A DNA stretch of 64,000 bases, taken from NCBI RefSeq assembly GCF_016433145.1, contig NC_058136.1, positions 73,411,635 through 73,475,634 on the forward strand, written 5' to 3'. Source of the stretch: Gracilinanus agilis (lineage: Eukaryota). Under the pieces are notes generated by a model, which ran no database searches, was not told where the DNA came from, and saw only the letters and a program-made list of their open reading frames with translations. This document shows positions 37,437 to 59,464 of the stretch, in pieces. A program made the position numbers and the translations under genes. Each line of letters starts with the position of its first letter. Positions within the stretch are counted from its first letter, which is position 1.

Positions 37437-40400
37437 TAAAATGTCATTTTATGCTATTGTTCTGAATTCTGAGTTGAGGCTAACGGGCCAGATTTCATTC
37501 CCTCAGTGGCTGTGAGATCAGAGAGCTGCTACAGGCGGGCGGGTGTGCTTGGGAAGGGTAATGGCAGGAGTCTCTTGCCTCAGTTCTGTGCTTCTTTGCC
37601 TTCTCGCCTGGTTGGTCCCGGAGTTGGCCTCTGCTGCTCCAAAACAAAGGGCTGGCAAGGAGGCTTTACCCCACTGGGCCGACATCAGGCCGGTCTGGGC
37701 CCTCGAAGGACACTTAGATACAGAAATATTTCTATGAAGAAAAAGGGGCGAGGACGTCCGCTGCTTCTGGGGGGCGTTTGTACCAAAGAAGGGCTGCCAA
37801 CACGGGACGAGGTGCTGTGCCCAGACGAGTTTTTCTCCCCTGGGATATACGGGATCCCCCCAGTGTAACGTCATTTATTGAGAGGGGCGCGTGGCCTCTC
37901 GATAAAGGATCGGCCCCTGCACGCAAAGACGCTCTCGTGAGCTCTGACGCTCTTTCCGTTACGCACAGAAACAATTTTTGACGATTGTTCTCGGACATTT
38001 TAGGAGTCCAATTTTGTCCCTCCCCCTCCCCGAGGTGGTAAAGAGCCTGGCAGGGGCTTTCACGTGATACAGAATTCCACGTCGCTCATGTGTGACAGAA
38101 GCCCTAACTAGTTACTGGAAGGCTAAATCGAAGAGGCCGCGCGAGGCCCGCCTCGCTCATCACCAGCCGCACTACCCGGGCGATCTCTGCGAGGGCCTCG
38201 GCCCAGACCCGAGATGAAATGAGACGATGAAACGGCTTAGCAAGAACGGGCAAGGGGGGGGGGGGCCGCGTGCCATTTAATACTGGTCGCCCGAAGAGCT
38301 TCGTGCCCAGATTCGAGCGTGGATAGGCCGATGTCGAAGTGTGCGACGAGGGGAATCTTTGATGTCCGATTCCCCTGGACTCCTTTTCATCGTCTGGGGC
38401 TCCGCTCCGGGCCATTCTTCCTGCAGCTTCTGGCTAACCGAAAGTCCATCTTCTGTTAATATTAACCTCACCTGACCAAGAGCTGCCACGTGCAATCAGA
38501 ATGCAGAGGGGCGGCGGTTGGAATTTGACCTTCCCAATTGTCCTCGAGTCCCTCCGAGGAGTAAACAAGAGTAGGCGTTCTCGGGGGGGGGGGGGGATCC
38601 CCATTTTGCTTAGCTAAGTTTATTCAGCTTTTATGGCTCTGAGGAAAGTACGAGACTGTAAATCTCGATCTCGGTGTGTGGAAGGATCCCTTCTGGCCTT
38701 TCTGATGTGACCTTATCCGTAAAAGCCTGTCAGAAAATCCTCATCGTCCCCCTCCCCGCAGCCCGGATCTGTGCGTTGGAACAGATTTCTTTGGACAGCA
38801 GAGGAGACGCCCGCAAAAGGAAGCCAGCCATGCGGGCAGGGGCTAGACTTGGAGTTTCAATGGGAAAATGCCCTCTTTCGTGCCCTGAGGTGAAATGACT
38901 TGCCTGGGCATCTGAGGCTGGATCTGAACTCGGGGCTTGCCAGGTCCGGGCCCGGCGCTCTCTCCCCAGCACCACAAACTGGGGGGAAAGTCTTTTACAC
39001 GACAGCTAGGTCCGCACTAGTGGGGATTCTCGTTGCACATTTCCACTGGGGCGTTCTACATTCACGCTCACTGGCGCAGGGTTATTTCCGGGGATCCCCG
39101 TCCAGCTCCGATCAGGCCCCAGCTCTAAGCACTCGAGCAGAGCGTGTGGCCCGAAGAGCCGGACGGATGCAGACGGAAGAAGACTTCGGGAAGTCCGCTG
39201 GCCAGCGAGGACGGCGAGTCAGCCGATACCGAGAGAAACGTACTCCCTGGAGAGACCTGCGGCCGCACGACTGGAAAAGGAGGAGGCGGCTGGCGACGTG
39301 GGGCCGTGGAAGCCACCAACATGAGCCTGGAGAGACTTCGGCAGCTAGTGGGGGACGGAAGGGCCCGGGAGCCAAGAAGCGCCCAGTCGCGCGTCCATCT
39401 CTCTCCTGGCCCTGCGGTTAAACCCCTTGAGAAGGCCGCCTGCCCTGGGCGTCTCCGCTTCTGTTACTCTCACGCTCGCTCCTGCCTGGCCCATCACCCA
39501 TCGGAAACTCCCTTTCTAAATCTGCTCCAATCCGATGGCCTCGTCTCCATCCCCATCCTCCCGGCCCTCTCGGAAGCCTCGGCCGCTATGGGCCAAGGCT
39601 CCACCTCGATACTCCTCCTTCTCCGGTGTAGGCCGCGCTCACTAATGCTTCTGCCCTGGGGCTCCTTCTCTTTGCCCTCTTAGAGTTAGAGGTATCTTGA
39701 ACCTCTCAAACTAGATCGCCCAAAATGCCTCTCTGCGTTACCCAGAATGCACTTCCCTTCGTCCACGTTTGCATCTCCCCCCCCCCCCCCATGAGCGTGG
39801 CTGGGTTAGCACCTTCTTGCTTTAGCTGTTATTAGGAAACTTTAGACAATCTAACACTTTGCGTGGTAGGCCGATGATCTCATTGGCCTGGCCCGGCCCT
39901 CGGGCTCCTGTCACCATCTTCCTATTGGATGGCTGCGCCTGGATGGCCTAAACGGAACTCCTCATCTCCACTCTCTGCAGCTTCCCTCAGACTCACCCGG
40001 CCTCATCCGGGTTAGAGAGGCTGCTAAGTCCTCCCAGTGTGACCTCTGACATCATCACCACCTCCTGTTGGACTCCAGCGGCAGCTCCTGGGGCCGGGCG
40101 GTCCCTCCTTCCCGCACTCCACTATCTAACTTGCCCTACTATGTGCTAAGCTCCCTATGACAATCCTTTCAGGTAGATGCTATTATTGTCTATTTTATAG
40201 TTGAGGAAATTAAGGCAGAGGCTGTGACTTGTCCAAGGGCATAACTACTTGGGGATTTGAAGCCACATTTGAACTCAGGTCTTCCTGACTCCAGGCCCAC
40301 CGCTCTAGCTGTCGAGCCTCCTGGTGGTCCCATACCTCGAGGATCAACCAGAAAATCTGGCTTGGCTTTGAAATCCTTTCGTGACCTGCCCGCCCTCCCT

Positions 40401-40794: not shown

Positions 40795-41294
40795 NNNNNN
40801 NNNNNNNNNNNNNNNNNNNNNNNNNNNNNNNNNNNNNNNNNNNNNNNNNNNNNNNNNNNNNNNNNNNNNNNNNNNNNNNNNNNNNNNNNNNNNNNNNNNN
40901 NNNNNNNNNNNNNNNNNNNNNNNNNNNNNNNNNNNNNNNNNNNNNNNNNNNNNNNNNNNNNNNNNNNNNNNNNNNNNNNNNNNNNNNNNNNNNNNNNNNN
41001 NNNNNNNNNNNNNNNNNNNNNNNNNNNNNNNNNNNNNNNNNNNNNNNNNNNNNNNNNNNNNNNNNNNNNNNNNNNNNNNNNNNNNNNNNNNNNNNNNNNN
41101 NNNNNNNNNNNNNNNNNNNNNNNNNNNNNNNNNNNNNNNNNNNNNNNNNNNNNNNNNNNNNNNNNNNNNNNNNNNNNNNNNNNNNNNNNNNNNNNNNNNN
41201 NNNNNNNNNNNNNNNNNNNNNNNNNNNNNNNNNNNNNNNNNNNNNNNNNNNNNNNNNNNNNNNNNNNNNNNNNNNNNNNNNNNNNNNNNNNNNN

Positions 41295-42679: not shown

Positions 42680-45600
42680 ATGCCTTACGACAGAGCAACC
42701 AGATGCTTCGGGAGCGCTATCAAGAGTTTGTGAACTTCCAGGCCAACCAGAAGGAGGAGAAGGAGTTTCTCATGAGAAAATTTCAGGAGGCGAGGACGCT
42801 GGTAGAGAAGCTAAAGATGGAGAAGCTGGAGCTGAAGAGGCAGAAGGAGAAGGCTCTGCAGGAAAGCGAAAAGGTACCGGGAGATCTGGGGTCACCCCCT
42901 CTCCCCCCAGTTCCATGGAACCCAGAATAAGCTCCAGAAACTTGGACTCGGCTGTAGACGAATTTCTCCACTCCTCTTTGGCAAGGAAGAGGCTGCGCTG
43001 TCTCCCAAACATCTGGTGGGGTGCTAAACACGGGGCGAATGGGGAGAGGGCCAATGCCCCAAGGGATTCAGATGGTGGGAGGAGCTAGGCCTACTTGAGT
43101 CGGGGTGTGGATGTCTTAAGTGGCTTTTCCCCTTATCTTGGATTGGTCCTGGTAGATCTTCTCGGGCTGGTGAACCTCGGCCTTCCCATAGTGCTCCATT
43201 TAGTTAATGCAATCACCCGACCCTCTTGCTCAAGGCTATGTTGAGGCGGCATCAAGTCAGGAAGACCTGAGTTCTAGTCCTAGATTGGCCGCTCAGTACC
43301 CTAGACGACTCTCTGATACTTGGTGAAGTTCAGCATCAATTGCTGCAATCACAAGATCCAAAGCTAGGCAACTGCTATTGTTTGTTAACAAAGCCCAGTG
43401 TGGTGACTTCAGTGCTTCAAAATGGCTGCCAAAGTGAAGGGAGAGGAGAGAGCCATTCAGGAATGTGACCGTTATTAGATGAAAAGGTCTTTCCAATAGT
43501 CCAAGGAGAAAACTTAGCCTTTCTCACTTTTAGAATGTGGGGTGCCTCCCTCCTTTTCTAAAGCCTGTTGTTGTCACTTCCCCTCCCCCATTTTAAATTT
43601 ATAGATGGGGAAACTGAGGCTCAGGGAGGGGAAGAGACTTGCTCCGAGTTGTGTAGAGGTCATCTACCTGCTATGTGCAGAAGGAGCTTTGATGATGGCC
43701 CACTGGCCTTTCTTGTGTCTTTAAGCGTTAAGGTGGAGCTTCGTACCCTTTTCCAGCCCAGTTGCCCTTTCTAATTCGCTGCTCAGCTGTACTTGAGGAA
43801 GCAAACACCTCTTTTGGGGGGGGGGGAGCGGGGGGCTCCAGGCCTGCAGAGTTATTCTGAAACTCACCGGATGCTTCTGAGTATAGGGCTCTGCCTTAGA
43901 CTGTGGGACATAGAGATGTAGAAGACTCTAGTCTTGGCCCTAGAAGAGATCAAGGTCAGGTCTGGGACGTTGTAGGGCCGTGTTGGTGAAGATGTGGTAC
44001 AGGTGCCCCAGCATGCAGGAGGGGACTGCTCCGTTCCCACCCTCTCCACCACGCCTGAGGACATTTTTTGCATGCTCTGCCCCTCTGCCCAGCAGCTGAA
44101 TGAATGCAAGCACTTCCTCCCTCAGCTGTCTGGGGTAAGGCAGGAGCTCCCAGGCAGCTTGAAGGTGCAGTTTGGGCACACGGTCTCTGAAAGGTTCACC
44201 AATGCTGTCACAGGGTATGTGGACACGGCAGAGTCTAGCGATACAAGGTAGCACCTACTAGGTGCCATATACGGGCGTGGGTGCTCCATATTGCTGCTAT
44301 ATAGAGTGCGCAGAGGGCCTGGCCCAGAGTCAGGGAAACCTGAAGTTAAAGTGGGTCTTAATTACTTCCTGCCATGGGACTTTGGGTAAGTCACAAACCC
44401 ATTTGCCTCAGTTTGCCCATCTGTAAAATGAGGATAATAACAGCACTTCCCTCCCAGCAGACCTTAGAGCACAAGCTCTCATTATGGAGAGGTAGAGGGG
44501 CTTCTTCCTGGGTTCTAGGCCTGGCTCCCTGCCACTATTTGTATCATCTTGGGTAATTCCCTTCTCTCTGAGCCTCCATTTTATCTGTAAAGGAATCACA
44601 CTGGATGACCACGAAGCCCCTCCCAGGGAGTATTTTTTTGGTTTCGGAATTGGATTTCTGTCCTGAACTTAAACCTCAAGAAGGGAACGTGTTCCATATA
44701 TCCAGTAGAACACGAAAGAGAATCAGTGGTTTGCGTGGACCCCCGAGACTCTGTTTTATACTGATAGCTTTAAAACATATGTGTGTAGGGGGCAGCGAGG
44801 TAGCCGAGTGGCTTGAGAGCCAGGCCTAGGGACGAGAGGTCGTCCTGGGTTCATATGTGCCCTCAGACACTTCCTAGCTGGGTGGCCCTGGGTGTGTCAT
44901 TTAACTCCAGTTGCCCAGCACTTGCCACTCTCCTGTCTTACAATTGGTCCCGAGCAGAAGGTAAGGGTTTGAAAACCAGTTTGGCCCCCTGGGCTTGCTT
45001 TGCAGCAGCCCCTTTTGCTATGGTCTGGGGGCTTCTGTCCGACTTGTCATGCAGTTCTGGCGTGGAAGAAATGCCACAGCTCGTTGGCAGATTTCGGGGG
45101 CACTCGGGCTTGTGCAGACTTCAGGTCTTACGAGAGCAGCTGTGTTGGAGCTGGGGCGTCTGGCCCGCTCATCTTGCCCCGAAGTCCACTCATTTGGGTT
45201 CTAATGGTTTCTGAGTAACGGCGAATAAGGCGGGATCACATCGTGAGGGATTCGAACACCAGGCCAGGGGCCAGGGCTTGTTTTTGACCAGGGAGTGAAA
45301 AGAAGAAAGCTCTTGGCTGACAGCCATTGCTTTCCCCGGGGTTCACGAGAGTCCGGCAGCATAAACGGGCACAGCAGTGACCTGGCGGAAGTCTCTCCAG
45401 CACCGTGAGCAGGTCTGCTTCCGCCCAGCTTGGCAGTGAGGTGGAATTGGGCCTGCTTGGTATTGATTTAGCTCTGAACCTGCCAGAGCATTACAAGCAC
45501 GGGGCCCCTCGGAGGTAGCCCTGGAGAGTCCTGGCTGATTCCCAGTCTCTGGTTTTATAAGGGTCAGATTCCTGGCGAGACCGAAAGAGAGGCTTGGCGG

Positions 45601-48600
45601 ATCCTAAAAGAGCAGCTCGAGGACCGTTTGCAGCAGCTGGAAGAGACCAGAGAAGGTCTCCAGAAGGAGAAAGAAGCCCTTCTTCTGGAGAACCAGGAGC
45701 TCAGGACAAAGGTAAGCGCGAGCACGTGGGGGGGGGGGGGGCGCATGGCAGCTCCTTGTCTCTCTGTGGCAGTCACACAGCTGAGCCTTTCCCTGTCTGG
45801 ACTCACTTTGCCACCTTGCAGGAGGAATGGGCTTGGACTAGCTGTTCTCTAGGGTTCCTTTTTGCTCTGCGATTCGACAGTTCTAGTATAGAATCGTGGC
45901 ATTTCGGAGTTGGAGGGGACTCTGGCTGGCTTCCGGGCCCGAGGGTGGGGGCTTCTTGGGCCCCTCCGAAAATAAGAAAGCCTCATTTCCGAGCGTAAAA
46001 GCCGTTCTGAGGTGGGAGACCTGGACAAGGGAACTCTCTCTCATTGGCGTCGGAGCATGGGAAAGAGCTCAGTGCCCCCCTGGGCTGCCCCGCCTAGGAA
46101 GGCCTGTCCGCCCTAGCTGTGTGGCTCTCGTGTGCTCCAAAGCTTCCAGACAGTGGAAACCATTCCGCTTTGGAACAGCAGCTCTCACTGCCAGGAAGGC
46201 TTTCCTGGAAGCGAGAGGCGGTTGGACACCGGGCCCCGGGGCAGCCCTTCAGATACTTGACTGCTGCTCTCGTGTCCCTCTGAGCCTTTTCCTCTCCAGA
46301 GGAAATGTGGACTCCAGGCCCACCCCCATCCCGGGAGCCCTTCTCCAGCTGATCCGTGCTAAGGACACGCTGAGGGCCACCTAGATGGCTCAGTGGATAG
46401 AGAGCCAGGCCTCCAGGTCCTGGGTTCAAATGTGACCCCAGACACTCCTCGCTGTGTGCCCCCGGGCAAGTCGCTTAGATGCAGTTATTTGGCTCTTCTC
46501 ACTCTCTTGTGTTGGAAGAGCCATGCTTAGTATTGACCCGCTGAAGCCTCAACTCCAGGTGAGATCTGACGAGGGCCCGAAGCAGCGGCCTTCTTTTTCT
46601 CCTCCCTGTTCTTGGTCAGAGTGCAGCAGCCCAGGATCCATTTAGCTCACTGCTGCCCTGGCCCCTTCTTCTGCTCGGGAAATCGGTAGATGAGACTGCT
46701 CGTGCCTTCGGTCTGATTCAGTGCCCCCGAGCCCTCTGGCTCTCCAAGATCCCTTGGGCTCCCGACTCTCACCACTGGAGGAGGTGCCAGCTCTCGATCT
46801 GTGTCGAAGGCAGTGGCTAAAAACGGTCCGAGTTCCTCTGGGGAAGAGAGAGAGGGCGGGAGTGAGTCCTGGGGCAGGAGAGACCCTGGCCGAGAGCTCG
46901 GTGCAGGTGGGAAGAAGCTCGTGTCCCCCCGTGTGGTGTCAGGCCCGCACTAGAAGCAGCATGTTGGCCGCCCTGGCCTGGCTCTCTTTCAGCCGGGACA
47001 GGCTCGTCCCGGATCCGCACTTCCACTCGGACAGACGTTGCCCACCGCCGTGTGCCCGCTTCCCTGGGTGACGCCTGCTTTTCTCTGGCATTTCAGAACG
47101 AGACCCAGCCGCAGAGACCGCCGGAGACCGAATCTCTGCAAGGGGCGAGCGGCAGGTCAGCCTTCCCGCGTCTCAGGCCGTCTGCTTTCTTCGTGTGTAG
47201 TTTGGGATCGACCCAGGCCCAAAGTGGCCCGTCCCCGCCTGGTTCCTGGGGCTTGGCGGGCCTTTCTCGGAGCCCACAGAATTCTCACGAGGGGAGGCTC
47301 ACGGCTTAAACAAGACAACAGGGATGCGGGGGGTGGAGAGAGGCGATGGGGCCCGAGAGACTTGGGACAAACTGTACTCCCTGCTCTTGGGCCTCCTCAG
47401 GAATTGGGGCGGCATCCCTGGTGCCCCAGAATCGGCACACCCAAACCCATTGAAATGGGTGCATTTAACAAACTTCTACTAAGAGCGCTTCCTGCGTGCT
47501 AGGCCAGGGATACCAAGAGAGGCAAAAGCCAGTCCCCGGCCTTGAGGAGCTCGTGCGAGTTCTCATGGCCAACGCAGCAGGCAGAGCCGGCTGGGTACAG
47601 GTTCGTGAGGAAATAACGAGCGGAGGGAAGGCACCGGAATGAAGATGGGATTTTAGTTGGGACTCGAAGGAAAGCCAGGGAGGGCAGTGGTCAGAGCACA
47701 GGAGGGGAGAGCGTTCCAGGCATGGGGAGTGGTCAGAGAGCCGGGAGATGACAATAAGGGCGCGAGGTACAAGGAGACTGAGAAGGTAGAGGAGGGGGCT
47801 GGGTTCTGACTGGCTTTGAGTGCTAACGATCCTGGAGGCAATAGGGAGCCACTAGAGTTCGTCGAGTGAGGGAAAGTGGTGATTTGATTGGGCTTGAGCT
47901 TTAGCAAAATCACTTTGGCGGCTGCTTGGAGGAGGTGGCGAGGGCCGGCCTGCACCAGGGGGTGGGAGTGTCACAGGAGAGGAGAGCATATTTGGGAAGT
48001 GCTGTGAAGGTGGCCTCAGCAGGCCTCAGCAAGGGCTTAGGTGTGGGAGGATGTAGAGAGTCAGGATGCCTCTGGGCGCCGCCCTCTGTAGTAATAAGGG
48101 GAAAGACAACAGGGTTGAGATGTCCGGAAGGCGGATGGAGGTCAGCAGAGAGTCTGGGGCAGGATGGGTAGGTCTGAGAATCGGCAGCATTGAATCTGTG
48201 GGAGTCGAGGAGCTCCCCAAGCGCAGTGGTCCAGAGGGAGAAGCAAAGAGGGCCCAGGCCAGAGCCCCGAGGGATACTTCCCCCAAGAAAGGGCGCGGCC
48301 TGGCCGAGGATCCGCCACCATCAGAGAGAGGAGGGGAACCAGGAGGAAGGGACGTCCCCGTGTCCTGCAGGACTGCCAGGAGGCCATCGATCTGGTGACA
48401 GCCGAGATCCCGAGTAACTGGAGAGAGAGGTCGTAGGGGTCAGGAGGTGCTTCTCGTCGGCTTTCTAAGCAGTAGGGAAAGGGCCGGTGGAGAGGGAGAG
48501 ACCGAGAGGGGCGACACGGCGGGGCTGCTGCCCGAGGAGGCGGGATGGAGACGGGTAGTGGAGGAGATGGTGGCAGAAGAAGGGACCCGAGTGATAGACA

Positions 48601-51600
48601 GATGAGGAAAGGAGACGGAGCTCTGCCGAGCTCTGCGCGGCTGCCCGAGGCATCGTCCTCCTATCCAGGGAAGCTCTGGGAGGCCGGGATCCGCTTTTGG
48701 TTTTCTCTGTGTCCCTCCCGTCTCCTTTTGGGCGGGGGCGATCCCTGGGGGACGACGAGGAATGCGGGCCAGATCGAGCAGTTGGATGCCACGTGTGCTC
48801 TTCCACATCTCTGCTGCTACAGGCAGGGAAACACGAGAAACCCAGAAACAGGAGACAAACTTAGGGTGGGCCAAGCAGTTCGTGAGGGCCTACTGTGTGC
48901 CAGGCATGGTGCTTGATGCTTCCCACATACTGTCTCATTTCAGAGTTGGGGGGGGGCCAGCACCGGGGCCCCCGAGACCCCTCCACCTTGAGGCGAAGAG
49001 CTGGTCCCCTTTGATCCCAGGTGGGGCTGGAGGCTAGAGGGGCGACTGAGCCCGCCCAGCTCTGGAGTCAGTGGGACGTCGGCCTGGGCCCTGCTTCTTT
49101 TGCCAGGACTTCTCTGCCTGTGGGCCAGGCTAGCCCCAGTTCCGATGTGGCCTCAGACACAGGTCACTTCACCTCTGCCTGCCTCAGTTGGCCCATCTAT
49201 AAAGTGGGAATCATAGCACCTCCCTCCCAAGGGTGGGTGTGAGGGTCGAATGAGAGAGATTGTAAAGTTCTGAGCATAGCACCTGGCACACAGTAGGTGC
49301 TTAGAGGGGCTCTCCAAGGATCCAGGCCTTGCAATGGCTTCTCATCCTTGTTTTTCCTTTTGGTGCCAGGAGTGCAGATTCTGATGACCTGCTGACGAAG
49401 GTGCAAGATATGGAGAATGAGTGAGTTGTCGCTTTGCGGTCAAGCCCCACAGGCTCACCCATTCAGTGGGCCCGTCGCCATTGCGTGATGGGACTAGACT
49501 GCCCTGCTCTGCTCGGGTCCCCTCTGCCCCGTCCTGCCCTCTTTCTGGGCTTGGGTTCCCGGGTGCTTTTTGCCCTGTCGTGCCCTGCTGTCCTTGCCGT
49601 GCTTGGTTCCAGGCCGGCCTCTCCTCGCCCTGCCCTTGCTGAGCCAGGGGACAGGTAAGGATTCCCTTTTCCAGGAATACGGCACTCAAGCAGGAGCTGG
49701 CATCCCTGCAGGGCAAGATGGCCCACTTGGCAGTAAGGGAAAAACAAGTGGAGAGGCGGGCCGAGCAGCAGTTACAGGCCCTGAAGAGGCAGGTGGAGGT
49801 GAGGAGGGAGAGGGCTGCCCGGGCTCAGCGTCACCAGAGCGCTTAGCACCCTGGGGAGAAAGGGAGGAGGGGAAGCGAGGAGCTGAGGACGAGGAGGGAG
49901 ATAGGCAGAAGGAGAAGCAGCCATCCTGGGTTTTGTGGCCCAGAACATGGTTTTTTTTTTTTTTTAAACCCTAATATCTTTATATGTCCTTCTATATTAA
50001 TTTTATTTGTTACAGGGCTAGGCAATGGGGGTCAAGTGACTTGCCCAGGGTCACGCAGCTGGGAAGTGTCTGAGGCCAGATTGGAACCCAGGACCTCCCG
50101 TCTCTAGGCCTGGCTCTCCATCCACGGAGCCATCCAACTGCCCCCAGAACATGGTTTTAGACTGGGCCAGAGTGTCTACTTAGAGCTGGAAAGCGGGGAG
50201 GGACTTGCCCACGATCGTCCCCTGGGTAGTGAGGAGCCCTGTTCCCCTGACTGGGCCTCAGTTTCTTGACATGTTGAATCTTTGATAGCCTCGAAAGGCC
50301 CATGACTTACCTATTGACAGAAGGTAGCCTTTCGTCATCTGCACACGTCTCCCCTGGCCCCTGGCGTGGAAGGCCCGGGCCAGCTGCTTGTCCGTGCCGC
50401 CGTGGATATGCTCAGATCGCTCACTAAGCACACAGCAGTGTAGATTTTGGGCAGCACCTGCCAGTGAGGGCTCTGGGAGGCGAACCGAAGGAAGCCCCGA
50501 GGCCTGGGTGCTCAGGTGGGCAGTGGGTGTCTTGGGGCCTTGACAGAGGTGTGGAGGGCATTCAGCACCGGCAAGGATGAGACGAGGGGCGTTTCTTAAG
50601 CTGCCTGCGGTCTGGCCCCTGCCCTCGAGACCCTTTGACCCTCGACGGGAAGATGAGACACGTTTACCAGTAACCATAGTGCGGAATGAGAATTCCCACG
50701 GGCCCCGCTTTTCCTGGGCCTTGACTTCATGAGAGGAAGCCAAGAGAAATAATAGCTATTGATCCCACACTCGGGGCTTTCAAAACGCTTTTGCAGTTAG
50801 GCTCTTTCATGGATCCCAAGCACCCTGGGAGAGACATACTCTTATAAGCCCCATTTCACAGCATAGGTTGGGTGACTTGCCCAGGGTCACACAGCCAGGA
50901 AATGTTGAAGCCTGAATTTGAACTCAGGCCTTCTGACTCCAGGTCCAGTGCTCTGTGTACTGTGGTACCTCTTCGCTGGAAGGGCAGGTTGGAGGCAGAT
51001 TGTCGAGGGCCTCGAATGCCCAGCCCAACACATTTGGACTTCTTGAGAATCAGTGGAGGGAGGGGCATCAGCATCGGCAGCGTTTTGAAGGAGAGTGACG
51101 TTATAATGGTTGTCTGACATTCGTGTGCAACCAGATTGGAGGGGAGCCAGCCGGAGGTTAGGAGGCGGTGTGCATCAGCAGTGGCAGCACCCGCCGGAGG
51201 ACTGTCTGAGGGGGCCCTCGGCAGTCCTTCCCGGCGTCTGTCAGGCCCGTTCAGAGAAAGAGCCCCAGGAGGCCCCGCTTCCGGGATGGCTTGGTAGGTC
51301 TTGCTAGATTTTGAGCTGCAGTGGTAGGGCGGGACCCCTTCCCCAGGGGCCCCCGGCGGAGAAGTGGGGTTAGGAAGATGGAAAGGCCGTGCGCTCGGTA
51401 CCAAGGGAGAAGCTTGGAGCACTGCGTGTGGCCCCTGCGGCGGCAGTTCAGGTGTGTGTGGGGGCAGAAGCCGGGCGGCCGTAGGTGCCGGGGGAGTAGA
51501 GACGGCAGGAGCAAGGGGGAGCTGTTTCCCCCTACGCTCGGATCGGAGGGTCGGCGCAGCGGACGTCTGAGCAGGTGGCTCCTGGCCTCCACCTCCATTG

Positions 51601-54600
51601 CCTCCTGGGTGGCCCCGAGAGCCCTTCCCGCTCTGGCGCATCCAACTTCTCAGTCGGGGGTTATCTGTGACGTTTTGATTTTTCCGCTCTGAACGTACGC
51701 ATCCGACCTGCAGAGGGGAAGTAAAGGTACACGCGGTTCGGTCCACAGCCAGGCCACTGGCTTAGCACGTGGCCTTGTGAGGAATGGGGGTCTTGACCCC
51801 AGCCGCCACCTTTCTCTCCAGATGAGAGCCACGTATTCTGTATTGCTATATATTACAGCAACTGACGGAAGACAAAGGGTCTGTGAAAGCCCAGGTGACC
51901 TCACTGCTCGGGGAACTCCAGGAGAGCCAGAGCCGCCTGGAGGTCTCGAACAAAGACAAACAAGTCCTCGAGGACAGGTAGGGAGAAGCTGAACAGCAAG
52001 CAAGCTAATGGTGGCCATCCCTCCCGTGGGCCGGGCCCCTCCTCTCTTCTCCCTCTGGCCCCTCTGGGTCCAGTGACCAGCTCTGTGCTGAGGATTCTCC
52101 CATCCTGCCCCAGCGCCTCTGTCGACATCTCTGACTGGGTGCGCGGTAGACATCGGAAACTCCCGACCCTCCCGCCTCCAGCTTCTCTAGCACTGTGGGT
52201 GGCGACACCTGCCAGGCCCCCGAGGCACCATCCTTTCCCTCCCTCCCCACGTCTCACTTCTGCAGCATCTCCCAGTACGGCCCCTTCCTCCTCTCGACGC
52301 TGCCGCCACCCCTGGGGTGCCAGGCCTCACCACTTCCCGCTCAGACTGTTTCAGAGGCCTCAGGCCTCTGCCCACTGCTCTCTGTCCTCCATTTAGCCAC
52401 TCAGGTGAATTTCCCAAAGTGCAGGGCCAACCGTGTCACCCCCCGTGGCTCTCGATCACCCACAGAATCAAAGCCCTTCATAAGCTTTAGTGGCCTTTTT
52501 TTGGAAAGCTCTACCTTTTGTCTCAGTGTCAGTTCTAAGACAGAAGGGCAAGGGCTGGGCAATGGGGCTGAAGTGACTTGCCCAGGGTCGCCCAGCTGGG
52601 AAGTGTCTGCGGCCAAATTTAAACCTAAGTCCTCCTGCCTCGAGAACCACCCAGATGTTCTAAACTTTGCCCATCTTAAAGCTCCTTCTCCTATCCAGTG
52701 ACAGTTGGCTTTCTTGCCTTTCTCCGAACAAGACCCTGCTTCTCCCAACCCTGGGAAATTTCTCTGGGGTCGCTGCCTGGAACACTCTCTGTCCTCATCT
52801 CCGCCTCCTTCCTGGGCTTCCTTCCCAGCCCAGCAGCCCTTCTGTGCCCTGCTCTGTCTCTCTGGGGATTGTTTCCAGCTGATCCTTTCCCAAGTTGGTA
52901 GCTGGCCATCTTCCCGCTGGACTGGTTTCCTCGAGGCTGGGACCTTTGGGGCTCCTTGTGTCCGCAGGCCTCCGTGGTGGGCCTTCATGCTCCCGGGGCC
53001 CTGAGGGCATCTTCCTTTGAGGACCAGCAGAGAAGACTTCAGTTGCTCACTGCAAAGCCGATTTCCAGCCCAGGCAGGCCAGGGACTCGCCGTTTATTTT
53101 CTTCACAAAAGAACAATTTGCTTTCCGGGAGATTCAGGCACCGTTCCCTTAGGACATTCAGTTCTGAGGGGCCCCTCTCTCCTCGGAGGCCTGGGTTCTA
53201 GTACCTGTGGCAGGGAACGTCGGGTTAGAGCAGCTGATCCTTCGAGACCAGCCCTTCCTTCTTCCCTGTTGCTTTCTGGTCGGCCCAGGGTTTCCCTCCT
53301 GCCTTTGCTGCTGTGCTGCAGCTACTCTGCGCTTCTTTTGTAGTTTTCCCAACCATGAAAGGGCAGGAAGGTTCCTGGGCTCTCCGGCTGCTCCAGCCTC
53401 CTCCTTTCCGCTGAGGACTCTGAAGCCCGGGACATGCAGTTAGGCCCCCGGGGTGGAGCCGGAGCCGGAGCCGGAGCCGGAGCCCAGGTCCTCTCAGGCA
53501 GGAGTCCCGCGTCCCCCACAGACTGGTTGTCTGAAGAGGCCGCGCAGTGAGCGGGGCTCGAGCGCCTGGCTCCCGCGCTAGCGCTTAGATTCACAAAGGG
53601 CAGCCGTTCTCTGCAGATGCCCTCGAGCGTTCTAGGGAGTTGCTGCTGCCCTCGTGGGTGCGGTACCACAATCCGTTGGGGCTTGGGCTATGGGGAAGTC
53701 AAGGCCACCGTCTCCATCCGAGTGATACAGGCTGGGAAGTGCTGCCTCCGGCTCTTCTTAGAACAGAAACGACCTGCGATCCAAGGCCCGTTGGCAGGTC
53801 CGTTTCTACCTGGCAAGGGGCCCGGGGCCGAGCCTTCCTAGCTCACGCTCGGGTGAGATGGTTTGACTGCGACCCTGCCACTTAGGCATGGGTATGCTAA
53901 TGGTAGCCACTGGCTCGGCTCCCTTCTCAGCCTGAATTTCCACAGACCTCGCTAGGGAGCCATCTTGCTTGGCATGGGCGGCGCGACGCTGGGCTCTCCT
54001 TCCCCCACGGCCCCATCCCTGTCTCTTTCCCCCCCTCATCTTCCCGTGCCAGAGCTCGGACAGCCACGGAGAAGCTCAAGCAGCTGGAGAGCGAGAACGA
54101 GCAGCTGCACAAGCAACACAGCGTTCAGGTGGACCAGCTGCGCATGCAGACCCAGAACGTGGAGGCCGCCTTGCGCATGGAGCGGCAGGCTGCCTCTGAG
54201 GAGAAGTAAGTAAGCAGACGTGGCTGGGAGGGCCTCGTGTTAACCGTTGGACGTCCAGATTGTCCTCCGGCTCTCCTTTGCTTCCTTGGCGTCATTCCCG
54301 TTCTTTTTGCTCCCCCTAGCCTTTGAGGGAGGCAGATGCGGGGGGGGGGGGGGATGCCCTGCCATGTCTGAGACCGCCTCCCTTAGAGGCTCCCCCGGAG
54401 CTGGGCACCTTGATGGGCTCGGACCGAATGCCGAACCTCTTTGAGCCTCAGACTCCTTGGCACTAAAATGGCGAGCATGAGCCTTGCACATCGTAGCTTC
54501 TAGTTCTTTCTTGTGAGAAAAGTGAATCGCAAAGTCTGTACGCAGAGCATGGGCTCTGGGTTCAGATCCTACTTCCAACACATCCGGCCCTTCTCCGTGG

Positions 54601-57600
54601 GCCCCAATTTCCTTGTTTGTAAAAGAAGGTTGAACGGGATGGCCTCTGCGCTTCCCTCCCAAGATCGAAGACCTTGGAGGGGGATGGGCTGATCAGAGAG
54701 GCAGGCCACCAGCCCGAGAGATGGCCCGGTATGGCTGTTTCAGAATAAAACAGGCACGTGGCATAGGGCCACTTCGATACCCCGCTAGCAGGAACAGGGG
54801 TCTGTTGGGCCCAGTGACCCTTAGACGACCCTTGGCCTTTTTGAGAATTGCAGTGGACTTAACGAGAAATGGCCCACGTGCGGACTTCCTGAGCCAATAA
54901 CCCTTTCCCTAGTCAGTGGGCAGAGGGAAGGGAGGTTTCTCGGGCAGGACTTTTTTCCCTTTGCGGAAGAATCTTTTGGCTGCCCCCCTGGATGATGTGG
55001 GGGAAACCCCTGAGGCCTTTTGTCTTAAAGTTTCTTCCGAGGCCTGCGTGGAGCCACTCCGAGAGGGTTCTTGTTCTCTTGGCCCCGGGCCAGGCCACCT
55101 TTTGGGCTCGCTTCTCCAGCGTGTGTTGTTGCGGGAGCTAGTTCCGGGGCTGGGCTCTGTTCGTGTAATCAGTCACCAGATAGAGGTGGAAGCGAGCTCT
55201 GGAGATCCAGGGGCACAGAATGAAGGCGCCCCTCCATAGATTGCTCCTCGGGAGGAGCAGCCGCGCCCAACGGGGAGTGTCGGGACTTATCCCAAAAGCT
55301 GGCCTTTGAGCCGGCAAGGAGATGGGGCAGCGCGGTGAGAATAGACGTGGCGGGGAAGCCCCTTCTGCGTCCCTCTCGGAAGTCCGTGCCCAGCCCTGAG
55401 CCTGCTGCACTGAAGGGAGGGATCAACTGAGAGACTTCCAGACCCGTGGACTTAATTGCTGGATCTGGCTTCCCCTAGTCTCTCTCCCCTTGGCCATAGC
55501 GGGGGCAAAATGACCGGGGCTGGCAGCCTAAGTGCAGGGGCCAGCCTCGGGGTGACCGCCCGCCTCCCGGGCATTCTCTGCGCCAGCCGCCGCCGCGGCA
55601 GCATGGGAAAGGGCCCTCGTCTGCCTTTGGTCTCGTGGACGAAAACCGCGTGGAGTCGCCTGGGAAGAAGGGCTTTCTTTGCTTCACGTGGTGAGCAGGG
55701 GACGCGGGGGCTAAGCCGGCGGGTTCTGCTTTGGTCTTTTCAGGCGGAAGCTGGCCCAGTTGCAAGTAGCCTACCACCAGCTCTTTCAGGAGTACGACAA
55801 CCATATCAAGAAAAGCCAGGCCAGCAGTGAGCGCAGCCGGGTGAGTACACAGCCAGCTGCCCTGCCTTAGAAGTGCCGCCCCAGCCTGGGGGGCAGGGCT
55901 CACGTTTCTCCAGGGCTTTTCTGTTCAGCAGCTTATGGGAAGGATGCTGTGGTTTGCACCCATTTGATTGATGAGGCAACCAAGAGCAAGGCTCGCCGAG
56001 GGTCCCAGGGCTAGTAAAGGGCCTTGTGAACCTTTAATCCTAGATTGTTTGAATCTCACTTTCCTTCCCACTGCTGATGGAGCCCCAAGCTCCTTTCTGG
56101 ATGCCGGCTCAGTGGGGAAGGCCTTCCTGAGAGACACCACAGTGGGGGAGAGAGGACTGACCTTCACGGTCACTTGTTTGATGCGTGACCCTGGACAAGT
56201 CCCTCCACTGCCCCCAAACTCCATTCTCCTCTGGGAAACAGAAAGATACCAGCACTCAGTAAGAGTGACATTCAGCGGGGCTGCGAAAGGCTTTCCATTC
56301 CCATTTGAGTCTCACAACAGCTTGGGAAGCATTCGGGTCACTCCTCTCATCCCCATTGTGCAGAAAGAAGGCCAGTGAAATACGGGCCCAGAGGGGCAGG
56401 CGGTGCGCATTTATTAAGCGTCTGCTGTGTGCATCCCCATGGCAGTGGCTGGCTCTGCATCTCCAGTTGTCAGTGCTGGGCCTCCTTCTGGAGAAGTGTC
56501 TAGAACATGGCAGGGGTCCAGCTAGAGGATCGGTGCTCTAGTAATGATGTGGCTGGCCCGGGAAGCTGGAGGCCTCTGCCTGGCCTGGCCTCAAGTCCGG
56601 CCATGTCATCTTGGACAACACAAGTCTGAAAGCACACCAGGCCTCTGGGACCGCCCGTCTAAGGGAGGAGCTCTTCCGGCTGAAAAGAGGAGGACTCGAG
56701 TGGAGGGGAGTGGGCCGTCTGGTCTAGGCCCCCAGACCCGTCTCTGATAAGTGTCTGGCTAGCCACCTGCAGCCTCCTCACTGCTGACGCTCACCCTCTA
56801 GTTTGGGGAATAGATGAATGAGTAAGCGAGTGAAAAGCACTTAGTACGTGTTTCCCTTGTGCCTCGTCCTGTGCCAAATCCTGGGCACGCAAGTACAAAA
56901 ACAGTCGGGCGCAGCTAGATGGCTCAGTGGCTCGAGAGCCAGGCTTATTTAGAGACGGGAGGTCTTGGGATCAAACCTGGCCTCAGACACTTCCCAGCCG
57001 GGTGACCCTGGGCCAGTCACTTAGTTAGCCCCCATAGCCTAGCCCTGACCGCTCTTCTGCCTTGGAACCAATGCACAGATCGAACCCCCAAAGAATGACA
57101 GCAAAAAGCCGACGGCCCCTACCTTCAAGGAGTTTCTATTCTAACGGGAGAGATGAGCCTCACCAGGGAGAGAGGGCAGCTGAGACCTTAGGAAGGCTTT
57201 TCTCTTAGATCGTGCGACAGTCAAGGCCTCTGCCACCTGGGAAAACAAGGCGGCACTGCGGAGGGGAAAGTGGCTTCACTTCTCGGGCTTACCTTGTGCT
57301 GCTCCTTCTGGCCTTGGCTAAGTCGCACCTCCTGGAACGCGTCTGCGCCTCGTCGTCGTATCGCTCTGAGGAAATGGCAGCCTGTTGCCGTGTGAGCTGT
57401 TACGATTGGCCTCTGCCTCCCGTGTGTCAGGAGGGAGCGCCTGCTACCATGTCCTAAGCACCGGGCATCCACCAAAGGGCAGGGCACTCTCCTTGTTCTC
57501 GGACCTTCAGGTGGCCGCTTAGAGAGCGCTCATGTTCCCCCTGATTGCTCTGGCACCCAGGACCAGCCACGGTGCTCGTCACCCTAGACCTGGCTGGCGT

Positions 57601-59464
57601 GCCCGCCTTGGCTGCTTTTGGCCCCGAGGCTCCTGTGAACGCGGCCTCGCCCAGGGCTGTGTCGACCAGTCGGCCCGCTGGTGACCCTTTGGGGGCTTTC
57701 TGTTTCGTTGCAGCGAGCGTGGCCCGAGGTCGTGGCCAGTCTCACGACGGCTCTGCAGGGAAAGCGGGAGCTTCTGTCCCTTGATGTGCTTTGCAGTGTG
57801 CCGAGTGTGACTCGGTCGCCTCGGCTCTTCTCTTCTCTTCTCTTAGGGAATGGACCTGCAGTTGGAAGACCTCAACCAGCAGCTGCAGCAGGCAGAAGAG
57901 GCCTTGGTAGCCAAACAAGAGTTGATCGACAAACTTAAGGAGGAGGCGGAACAACACAAGACGGTGATGGAGACGATCCCAGTCCTGAAGGCCCAGGTCA
58001 GAAGCCCTCTCGGGGCGCCGCTGGCCGATGTCTCCGAGAGGAGGGCTGGGCAGGGGCGCGGGCCTAAACGCAGTGTCTTCTGGTGGCCTCTCCGCCAGCG
58101 GGGCCAGGCAGCTTCCACAGAGTTGGAGCGGTGGGTGTGGTGAAGTTCAGCGAGCCTCCTTCTGGGAATGGCTTTGGGAGGGCGTCTGAACCAGGTGCCC
58201 AGAAGACCCCATTCTCCCGCCTCCAGGCTGATATCTACAAGGCCGACTTCCAGGCAGAGAGGCAAGCCCGAGAGAAACTGGCCGAGCGCAAGGAGCTTCT
58301 GCAGGACCAGCTCGAGCAGCTCCAGAGGGAGTATAGCAAACTGAGGGCTGACTCCAAAGAAACTACCCGGTGAGTCAGCCAGCCTGTGCCGGGGTGGCGT
58401 AGGGAAGTCCAGGCAGAATCGAGAGAGGCCCGAGTGTAGCCAGTGATTTTCTCTTCAGCTCTCATTTCCGTTGTGTTTCCTCTGACCCGCTGAAAAGCCA
58501 GCAGGTTTGACTGAGGCAGCAGAGTACCTCATTCAGTTCGGGGCTAGGCCAGGCCTGGCCAACGTCCAACTGGACGAGAGGAGGGTGGGCCTTTCTGGCA
58601 AGTTTTCAGGGCAATCGTAAGCCGCGTCGGCCTCTGCTGTAGAGAGACCGTTGGCAGTGAAGTAGAACCCGGAGCAGTGAAGAGGTTCCCGGCCCCGGGG
58701 GGCGCTGGGGTGGGTGCACAACCGCTCACTAGTTTGCTTGCCAAGGGCCGTGAACACAACTTTCTGCTTTCAAAGCATTGAAGACATGAGAAAACGGCAC
58801 GTAGAGAACCCGCAGGCGGCCCTGCCCCAGCCAGGTGAGTCCCAAGTGCCCGTATCCTCGAGCCAGAGGCGTGGAGCGATGTTGGGTTGGGGGTGAGAAG
58901 GCTTCCTGTCCAGAAGGCCCCATAGATGAACGACAGCCACAGCTTAGCAATGGACACGCTTTGCTGCTGTTCCAGGGAGGGGCCTTCCTGTGCTCGAGTT
59001 GGGAGTCCTTTGTGGCCTGTTGCCCCAATGGGAACTGGAATCCGGGCTGGCGTGACTCCAGGGAGGCTCTTGGGCTCGTGGCATTTCAGATGCCTGTGGG
59101 GGAACTTGGAGGCGGGCCGCTCAGCACAGAAGGCCTGGGGACCCGCTTAGTAAGAGTGGCCTGGCATACACGTTCCCCTTTGGGACCCGCACCTTGCTAG
59201 CCTCTCTCTGAGACTCCGTGTGTGTGTGTGTGTGTGAGTGTGTGTGTGTGCGTGCACGTGTGTGACTTGGTCAAGGTCACGACTAACGGATGTTCTCTTC
59301 TCTTAGTTCACCTTGTCAATCATCACCTTCCCTTTCACCCCATGCCGCCCGGCCAGAGGAGGAGTCTTCCCGACCAGCAGCCCGATTTTTGTTGTCCTAA
59401 ATGTCTGTATCAGGCCCCGGATATCGACACCCTGCAGATACACGTCATGGAGTGTATCGAGTGA
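42680..59464 (+). CDS. IKBKG: NF-kappa-B essential modulator (NEMO/IKK-gamma), spliced CDS; first coding exon not visible
   Basis: Exons homologous to human exons 3-10: 42680-42873, 51859-51977, 54053-54205, 55744-55840, 57847-57996, 58227-58369, 58776-58834, 59307-59464 (TGA). Motifs include [13 protein letters not shown]...[55 protein letters not shown] and the C-terminal zinc finger [25 protein letters not shown]. Five additional candidate exons are listed separately. Confidence 0.96.
44093..44134 (+). CDS. IKBKG: Candidate extra IKBKG exon A (42 nt, [14 protein letters not shown])
   Basis: Pyrimidine tract plus ccag acceptor (NAGNAG), GGG|gtaagg donor, phase 0-0 and an open frame. QLNECK loosely resembles the HLKRCQ end of human exon 3 that is missing from 42680-42873. 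Confidence 0.55.
44788..44970 (+). mobile_element. Opossum-type SINE
   Basis: gggggcagcgaggtagccgagtgg...gggttcatatgtgccctcagacacttcctagctgggtggccctggg...gcagaaggtaagggttt. Confidence 0.85.
45562..45711 (+). CDS. IKBKG: Candidate extra IKBKG exon B (150 nt, [50 protein letters not shown])
   Basis: ttttataag acceptor (alternative in-frame cag at 45567), AAG|gtaagc donor, phase 0-0. The peptide is strongly heptad-like and E/K/L/Q-rich. Confidence 0.8.
46375..46535 (+). mobile_element. Opossum-type SINE, degenerate
   Basis: ctagatggctcagtggatagagagccaggcct...gggttcaaatgtgacccca gacact...gggcaagtc. Confidence 0.8.
47097..47155 (+). CDS. IKBKG: Candidate extra IKBKG exon C (59 nt, [20 protein letters not shown])
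   Basis: ttttctctggcatttcag acceptor and CAG|gtcagc donor. It runs phase 0 to phase 2, the transition needed to reach the phase-2 exons D and E. Confidence 0.6.
49370..49420 (+). CDS. IKBKG: Candidate extra IKBKG exon D (51 nt, [17 protein letters not shown])
   Basis: tttttccttttggtgccag acceptor, TGA|gtgagt donor (GA are the first two bases of a split codon), phase 2-2 and an open frame. Confidence 0.75.
49675..49798 (+). CDS. IKBKG: Candidate extra IKBKG exon E (124 nt, [41 protein letters not shown])
   Basis: ttcccttttccag acceptor and GAG|gtgagg donor (alternative CAG|gtggag at 49792). It runs phase 2 to phase 0, joining in frame to 51859, and encodes a coiled-coil-like peptide. Confidence 0.8.
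49955..50142 (-). mobile_element. Opossum-type SINE with a variant AT-rich tail
   Basis: Reverse copy with a 16-bp target-site duplication cccagaacatggtttt (49939-49954 and 50143-50158). Confidence 0.92.
52510..52660 (-). mobile_element. CORE-SINE, degenerate
   Basis: ctaagacagaaggg...gcaatggggctgaagtgacttgcccagggtcgcccagctgggaagtgtctg. Confidence 0.8.
53455..53484. repeat. (GGAGCC)n hexamer repeat
   Basis: About five tandem ggagcc units. Confidence 0.85.
56908..57078 (+). mobile_element. Opossum-type SINE
   Basis: gcagctagatggctcagtgg...agagacgggaggtc...tggcctcagacacttcccagc...ctcttctgccttggaaccaatgcaca. Confidence 0.88.
59219..59263. repeat. (TG)n microsatellite just upstream of the last IKBKG acceptor
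   Basis: An interrupted tgtgtg run ending about 45 nt before the AG at 59305-59306. Confidence 0.9.

Follow-up and report, generated by a model that had tools for sequence, protein, structure and literature searches.

Four additional coding exons in the NEMO gene of the didelphid marsupial Gracilinanus agilis and their possible kinship with optineurin exons

Introduction

NEMO is the scaffold of the IKK complex, and its function depends on how kinase-binding helix, IVD core and ubiquitin-binding region are arranged relative to one another. To our knowledge, all structural and biophysical work on NEMO has used the 419-amino-acid (aa) form of eutherians. The IKBKG/NEMO gene of the didelphid marsupial Gracilinanus agilis raises the question of what is encoded in the 9 kb that separate the exon of the kinase-binding helix (exon 3) from the exon of the IVD core (exon 4). 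The locus was analysed in a window of 64,000 nucleotides (nt) from NCBI RefSeq assembly GCF_016433145.1 (contig NC_058136.1, positions 73,411,635 to 73,475,634 of the forward strand), and all positions given below are those of this window. In a first-pass annotation, five extra exons (A to E) had been proposed between the homologues of exons 3 and 4, with a total of 426 nt or 142 aa and a resulting protein of about 560 aa, and they had been explained by an ancestral, optineurin-like long NEMO that was shortened in eutherians.

We conclude with high confidence that four of these intervals, exons B, C, D and E, are genuine coding exons, which add 384 nt or 128 aa between the exon of the IKK-binding helix and that of the IVD core. 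We are equally confident in the overall picture, in which exons B to E are constitutive in didelphid NEMO and exon A is spurious. With moderate confidence and on indirect evidence, we take an old exon set shared with optineurin (OPTN) as the most likely source of the insert.

Exon structure of the locus

The coding sequence of the G. agilis RefSeq model XP_044538858.1 (634 aa; P0021 in our files) was mapped to the window at 100% with zero differences, which identifies the gene as IKBKG/NEMO. All exons lie on the forward strand. The model contains the exon 3 homologue (42680-42873; 194 nt, phase 1 to 0), followed by exon B (45562-45711; 150 nt, phase 0 to 0), exon C (47097-47155; 59 nt, phase 0 to 2), exon D (49370-49420; 51 nt, phase 2 to 2), exon E (49675-49798; 124 nt, phase 2 to 0) and the exon 4 homologue (51859-51977; 119 nt, phase 0 to 2). 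The boundaries of exons B to E are exactly those of the first-pass annotation. All seven intervals (these six and candidate exon A at 44093-44134, 42 nt) are bounded by AG and GT, and their phases chain into a single open frame as it had stated. The block B to E runs from phase 0 to phase 0.

Both flanks of the insert were identified by homology. The exon 3 peptide matches the NEMO kinase-binding-domain chains 6mi3 and 3brv in the PDB (E 1.6e-17 to 2.7e-15), and the window-encoded protein matches the Pfam family of the N-terminal IKK-binding helix (PF11577, E 2.4e-12). The latter match is partial because exon 2 is missing, and it is complete in the Monodelphis orthologue. On the other side, the IVD core is encoded in 51859-51977, with 76% identity to the eutherian fragment P0002 (tblastn). 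Further downstream the protein matches PF16516 (CC2-LZ/UBAN, E 1.6e-28) and PF18414 (C-terminal zinc finger, E 1.1e-15). The insert is thus located between the IKK-binding helix and the IVD core, where it had been placed from the start.

Conservation and selection

Marsupial NEMO proteins were retrieved with an alignment of the window's exon 3, B, D, E and exon 4 peptides, to which an unrelated protein of 451 aa was added as first row to widen the length range. The 8000 candidates sharing most words were scored, so that short isoforms could have escaped this search. The matches were NEMO isoforms of Monodelphis domestica (547 aa), Antechinus flavipes (573 aa) and Dromiciops gliroides (555 and 584 aa), and cluster members added those of G. 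agilis (634 aa), Sarcophilus harrisii (563-573 aa, including UniProt G3VKD7) and Sminthopsis crassicaudata. Exons B to E were found in all 18 marsupial NEMO proteins retrieved, which come from seven species and measure 547-634 aa.

For comparison at the nucleotide level, the loci of Sarcophilus, Dromiciops, Antechinus and Sminthopsis were aligned with the window, which gives five genomes from three marsupial orders (Didelphimorphia, Dasyuromorphia and Microbiotheria). The phases and the AG/GT sites of exons B to E are kept in all five. Exon 3 (194 nt), exon E (124 nt) and exon 4 (119 nt) have the same length everywhere. Exon C measures 59 or 62 nt, and exon D 51 or 54 nt, or 117 nt through an alternative acceptor in Dromiciops isoform X1. 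Exon B measures 150 nt in the didelphid and 192 or 186 nt in australidelphians. All length differences of exons B to E between species are multiples of 3.

The longer exon B of australidelphians (L001 21446-21637, L003 15506-15691, L004 23270-23461 and L005 17342-17533, in the respective loci) results, in these models, from a donor 42 nt further on; in Dromiciops, where exon B starts two codons later, the exon is 36 nt longer than in the didelphid. The extension adds about 14 residues (QAARGPAGESQPRTK or VAQGQAGENQLRMK). Both the proximal and the distal donor are used among the Dromiciops isoforms. In the didelphid, the sequence past the proximal donor is not open as it is in australidelphians.

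Within the 9-kb interval, which is otherwise poorly alignable with the four australidelphian loci, exons B to E stand out as colinear blastn islands of 70-88% identity (76-80% for exon B; 88% between exon E and its Sarcophilus counterpart). Ratios of nonsynonymous to synonymous substitution rates (dN/dS) were computed by the Nei-Gojobori method between the didelphid and the australidelphians, at a dS of 0.5-0.7. They are 0.16-0.27 for the insert and 0.11-0.21 for exon B alone, as compared with 0.04-0.12 for the other exons. Exons B to E are under purifying selection. The conservation and selection across marsupials that the first-pass annotation had called for was accordingly found for these four exons, and exon A has no part in it.

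Only three runs of unknown kind resulted from run searches, and words of exon B were detected in two small runs (X2 and X3) that did not qualify for the whole 6-kb interval 44000-49999. The presence of exon B words in runs lacking the interval as a whole fits RNA.

Exons B to E are already present in the public RefSeq and UniProt gene models of G. agilis and six other marsupials, and their sequences are therefore not new. No paper on a long marsupial NEMO form was found; judged by their titles and abstracts, the papers that name IKBKG together with marsupials treat other topics. Among other searches, a length-limited homologue search gave nothing with the exon B open frame and only eutherian fragments with the exon 3 open frame, fragment queries of the ESM Atlas returned only generic coiled-coil families, and metagenome scans for vertebrate host contigs found nothing.

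Origin of the insert and alternative explanations

Exons B to E probably represent an old exon set that is shared with the paralogue OPTN and was lost in the eutherian stem, an explanation that we hold with moderate confidence. This ancestral structure is favoured, on indirect evidence, because the exon number and all checked intron phases of OPTN match those of marsupial NEMO and because exons C to E are unlike exons 4 to 6. The optineurin-like ancestry suggested in the first-pass annotation is retained to this degree.

The insert could instead have been gained in the marsupial lineage, after the split from eutherians, by duplication of exons within NEMO, with exon B derived from exon 3 and exons C-D-E from exons 4-6. 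Exon B is indeed similar to the first two thirds of exon 3, with an hhalign score of 22.5 (E 2.8e-4) that none of 120 heptad-preserving shuffles attained, and it is 36% identical to eutherian exon 3 over 44 aa in an ungapped alignment. In addition, C, D and E have the same phases as exons 4, 5 and 6, and exon B lacks a detectable relative among 1.84 billion representative proteins. Exons C-D-E, however, are not similar to exons 4-6, the actual score being attained by 17 of 100 shuffles, and their lengths of 59, 51 and 124 nt differ greatly from the 119, 153 and 97 nt of the supposed sources; an origin of C-D-E as a young copy of exons 4-6 was rejected for lack of similarity. At the substitution rate of the insert (dN about 0.13 across the marsupial crown), a duplication that followed the therian split should still be recognisable. 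A marsupial gain would also leave aside the four exons that OPTN has in the same interval, with agreement of all checkable phases. Finally, a NEMO cluster in the Atlas has a 546-aa representative and 206 members, which likely exceeds what marsupials alone supply and hints that long forms are common beyond marsupials; the literature yielded no NEMO lengths for fish, frog or bird. A marsupial gain is for these reasons considered doubtful, and the likeness of exon B to exon 3 suggests, at the level of sequence, an old exon duplication. Should the module occur in fish and reptile NEMO as well, comparative immunologists probably know of it already.

Several points weigh against the ancestral, constitutive insert that we prefer. 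NEMO exons 4-6 show the phase pattern 0, 2, 2, 0 as well, which an internal duplication would therefore yield. The phase comparison with OPTN covers four of five introns, all but intron 5, and the comparison of OPTN exon 6 (residues 129-184, in a provisional sequence) with exon B gave a z of 1.6, which is not significant. Exon B alone, searched against the 1.84 billion representatives, matched only a spurious repeat protein, and the insert profile gave no significant family match in PDB and Pfam. Splicing of exons B to E is deduced from gene models and conservation, and the RefSeq models are themselves predictions. There could be short isoforms in which the block is skipped. The function as spacer, hinge or docking helix that is proposed below is an inference.

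The question of short isoforms leads to a second alternative, in which exons B to E form an alternative cassette, marsupials also make a form of about 419 aa by joining exon 3 to exon 4, and the long form is specific to certain tissues or signals. The first-pass annotation had likewise suggested that the block could be skipped. Since the block runs from phase 0 to phase 0, the frame would survive skipping, and the models contain much alternative splicing nearby, namely two exon B donors, an alternative exon D acceptor and, in Dromiciops, two exon 3 donors. Yet the block is present in every one of the 18 isoforms retrieved (seven species), with the reservation that the search could have missed short ones; moreover, all four exons are under purifying selection and all their splice sites are strong. 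The cassette is therefore regarded as improbable, and constitutive inclusion of exons B to E is preferred.

Even less credible is the version originally proposed, in which exon A is coding as well and the insert has 142 aa in a protein of about 560 aa. Exon A is open and runs from phase 0 to phase 0; its acceptor is good and its donor reads GTAAG. It is, however, absent from all 18 marsupial NEMO proteins and unused in the RefSeq model of this very genome. Blastn found no match to it in the four other marsupial loci, and in Dromiciops both its acceptor and its donor are gone although the flanks on either side align. In the 2.7-kb intron in which it lies, 189 open AG..GT intervals keep the frame, and 41% of shuffled introns yield at least one interval with splice sites comparable to those of exon A, whose peptide, in addition, is not heptad-like. 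Exon A as a coding exon was rejected on account of its absence from proteins, the loss of its splice sites and the chance expectation, and it is best described as a chance open AG..GT interval. Because exon A is spurious, the insert comprises 384 nt and 128 aa instead of the 426 nt and 142 aa initially given.

The remaining idea, that exons B to E are themselves artefacts, chance open frames that spread among marsupial annotations, can draw on the fact that all protein evidence comes from predicted models, but it is practically dismissed by exon-specific nucleotide conservation between orders at a pairwise dS of 0.5-0.7, dN/dS well below 1, length changes in multiples of 3, AG/GT sites conserved in five genomes and intact heptads.

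If the insert was lost in eutherians, the boundaries of eutherian exon 3 may bear on how. Exon 3 measures 194 nt in marsupials and 212 nt in the eutherian contigs L006 and L007 and is thus six codons shorter in marsupials, as had been noticed before. The last 18 nt of eutherian exon 3 (LKRCQQ) agree at 11 of 18 positions with the last 18 nt of marsupial exon E (LKRQVE; 49781-49798 in the window), and they do so in all five marsupials. Only about 0.2% of intronic 18-mers reach 11 of 18, and an equally good match (11 of 18) was found between the same eutherian 18 nt and the first 18 nt of the dasyurid intron that follows exon 3. A single in-frame deletion from the exon 3 donor to a point 18 nt before the end of exon E may account for the disappearance of the four exons as well as for the extra length of eutherian exon 3, while a donor shift of 18 nt would also fit the six codons. 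Remnants of exons B to E in eutherian intron 3, which had been suggested as a check, were not found in the approximately 1.5 kb searched (locus L006). An apparent copy of exon 3 in a Dromiciops intron turned out to be a GA-rich stretch of low complexity.

Predicted structure of the insert and proposed effect

The segment from exon 3 through exon 5 was modelled with AlphaFold2 from seven marsupial sequences (mean predicted local distance difference test score, pLDDT, 74). In the model, the exon 3 helix is followed by a break at GQIPG and by the exon B helix (residues 70-113, 44 residues). Model residues 114-137, which correspond to exon C and the first residues of exon D, are non-helical and of low confidence, and pLDDT is below 50 at residues 114-139. 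From exon D through exon E, exon 4 and exon 5, a single continuous helix is predicted.

Heptad analysis gave the same layout. In exon B, six successive d positions are occupied by W, L, L, L, L and L. In exons D and E, the d positions hold L, M, L, L, L and V and the a positions V, N, L and M; Asn at an a position is typical of dimeric zippers. Leucine-zipper matches of the insert in Pfam were all below threshold. The helices of B and D/E and the Pro/Gln/Ser linker of exon C agree with the first-pass annotation. Exon B would accordingly consist of a short break and a leucine-zipper-like helix of 44 residues. About 24 residues from exon C and the start of exon D (RSADS) would form a flexible linker that is acidic and rich in Ser, Pro and Gln. 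Exons D and E would provide a second zipper of about 55 residues, which continues into exon 4 and extends the CC1/IVD helix at its N-terminal side.

In a dimeric NEMO rod, such a module would lengthen the spacer that links the kinase-binding end to the IVD/ubiquitin-binding part and would give it a hinge, and it may also supply an extra docking helix. The known functional domains are all intact and would not be altered by it. Which partner exon B might dock can be narrowed in one respect. The pocket that binds IKKbeta includes F92 and F97 (human numbering), and the corresponding positions of exon B are Ala/Val and Asn. Because these pocket phenylalanines are replaced, exon B is unlikely to bind the NEMO-binding domain (NBD) of IKKbeta in the way exon 3 does. 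The insert was also inspected for the core [WFY]xx[LIV] of an LC3-interacting region (LIR): no copy is conserved among the seven sequences, and WRIL occurs in didelphids only, within helix B. An LIR in the linker was rejected, since a conserved aromatic core is absent.

These features mean that a mammalian infraclass keeps 128-144 extra residues, arranged as zipper, hinge and zipper, in the spacer of NEMO, and that they are under selection. Marsupial NEMO thereby provides a natural experiment on the effects of rod length and flexibility on IKK activation and phase separation.

Other features of the window

Downstream of exon 4, exons 5-10 were placed by the gene model and exact mapping of P0021 at 54053-54205, 55744-55840, 57847-57996, 58227-58369, 58776-58834 and 59307-59464, the last containing the stop codon, and they encode the CC2-LZ and zinc-finger domains. 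The lengths of exons 4-10 are presumably those of the human gene. The window also retains an intact alternative acceptor at 58746, which lies 30 nt ahead of exon 9 and would add 10 residues; the Gracilinanus model has the short form of this exon, and the long form is used in the X1 isoforms of Sarcophilus, Antechinus, Sminthopsis and Dromiciops.

Upstream of exon 3, the RefSeq model places three 5' exons at 39167-39385, 39632-39691 and 39870-40038 (forward strand), which encode an N-terminus unlike that of any other NEMO. The exon 2 peptide of Monodelphis (63 aa) has no match in the readable sequence of the window, and a run of N at 40795-41294 may contain the true exon 2. The first approximately 150 residues of XP_044538858.1 are probably an annotation artefact that stands in for the missing exon. 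The protein comprises about 547 aa, made up of 484 aa from exon 3 on and about 63 aa from exon 2; it is long, as first claimed, if somewhat shorter than 560 aa.

Interspersed repeats were found at 44788-44920, 50020-50150 and 50866-50970, which match many sites of the Dromiciops locus on both strands and probably belong to a marsupial family of short interspersed elements (SINEs); 44402-44448 lies in a similar element.

Comparison with optineurin and other NEMO proteins

OPTN has been described as differing from NEMO by a 166-aa insert that contains a leucine zipper, an LIR and a Rab8 site (PMC6018216; DiRusso et al., 10.1101/2023.05.25.542299). Introns of human OPTN were placed from variant tables after c.166, c.552, c.626, c.779 and c.882 (PMC4991756, PMC2268851), with phases 1, 0, 2, 2 and 0, and c.883 is V295, the first codon of exon 10 (PMC10764443). 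In our own exon mapping, the OPTN insert lies on exons 6-9, between the N-terminal kinase-binding helix and the homologue of the IVD core. OPTN exon 10 is taken to encode this homologue; the OPTN sequence assumed here fits the approximately twenty tabulated variant residues that were checked. OPTN exons 5-9 fall between introns that are positionally homologous to NEMO introns 2|3 (phase 1) and 3|4 (phase 0).

OPTN and marsupial NEMO are therefore alike in having four exons in the same interval. OPTN introns 4 and 6-9 (phases 1, 0, 2, 2, 0) correspond to marsupial introns 2|3, B|C, C|D, D|E and E|4, and of the five intron phases in the OPTN interval the four that could be checked all agree. In both proteins, moreover, a zipper helix precedes an acidic, Ser-rich stretch, the zipper being a structural resemblance only. 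A possible resemblance of SGxSxDS to the serines that precede the LIR in OPTN was not counted. The two differ in exon lengths (74, 153 and 103 nt for OPTN exons 7-9 and an estimated 175 nt or so for exon 6, against 150, 59, 51 and 124 nt for marsupial exons B to E) and in the LIR, which is present in the OPTN insert, whereas no LIR core is conserved in the marsupial one. No OPTN chain was among the PDB profile matches of the insert, and neither this search nor the exon 6 comparison showed significant similarity to the sequence of the OPTN insert region (residues 126-294).

If the exon structure is common to both, NEMO lost the module rather than OPTN gaining it, which would reverse the textbook direction and date the loss to the eutherian stem. 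In its fullest form, marsupial NEMO would keep the ancestral structure of NEMO and OPTN, in which the kinase-binding exon precedes four further exons and the intron phases are 0, 0, 2, 2 and 0; the 166-aa insert of OPTN would really reflect a deletion in eutherian NEMO, possibly in one in-frame event; and exon B would have arisen long ago as a duplicate of the kinase-binding helix and might bind another partner. We give this combined proposal an even chance.

Eutherian NEMO/IKKgamma (419 aa in human, 412 aa in mouse) shares with the marsupial protein a highly conserved kinase-binding helix, IVD core, CC2-LZ/UBAN and zinc finger. It differs in that marsupial NEMO has four more exons between exons 3 and 4, with 128 aa in didelphids and 130-144 aa or more in australidelphians. 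The marsupial models XP_044538858.1, XP_007506962.1, XP_031800537.1 and G3VKD7_SARHA all contain the same exons B to E. A more distant relative, Kenny (IKKgamma) of Drosophila, likewise carries an extra interaction motif that is absent in human NEMO, a functional LIR, but this motif is located at the extreme N-terminus (F7, L10) and not in the interval of the insert (PMC5668318).

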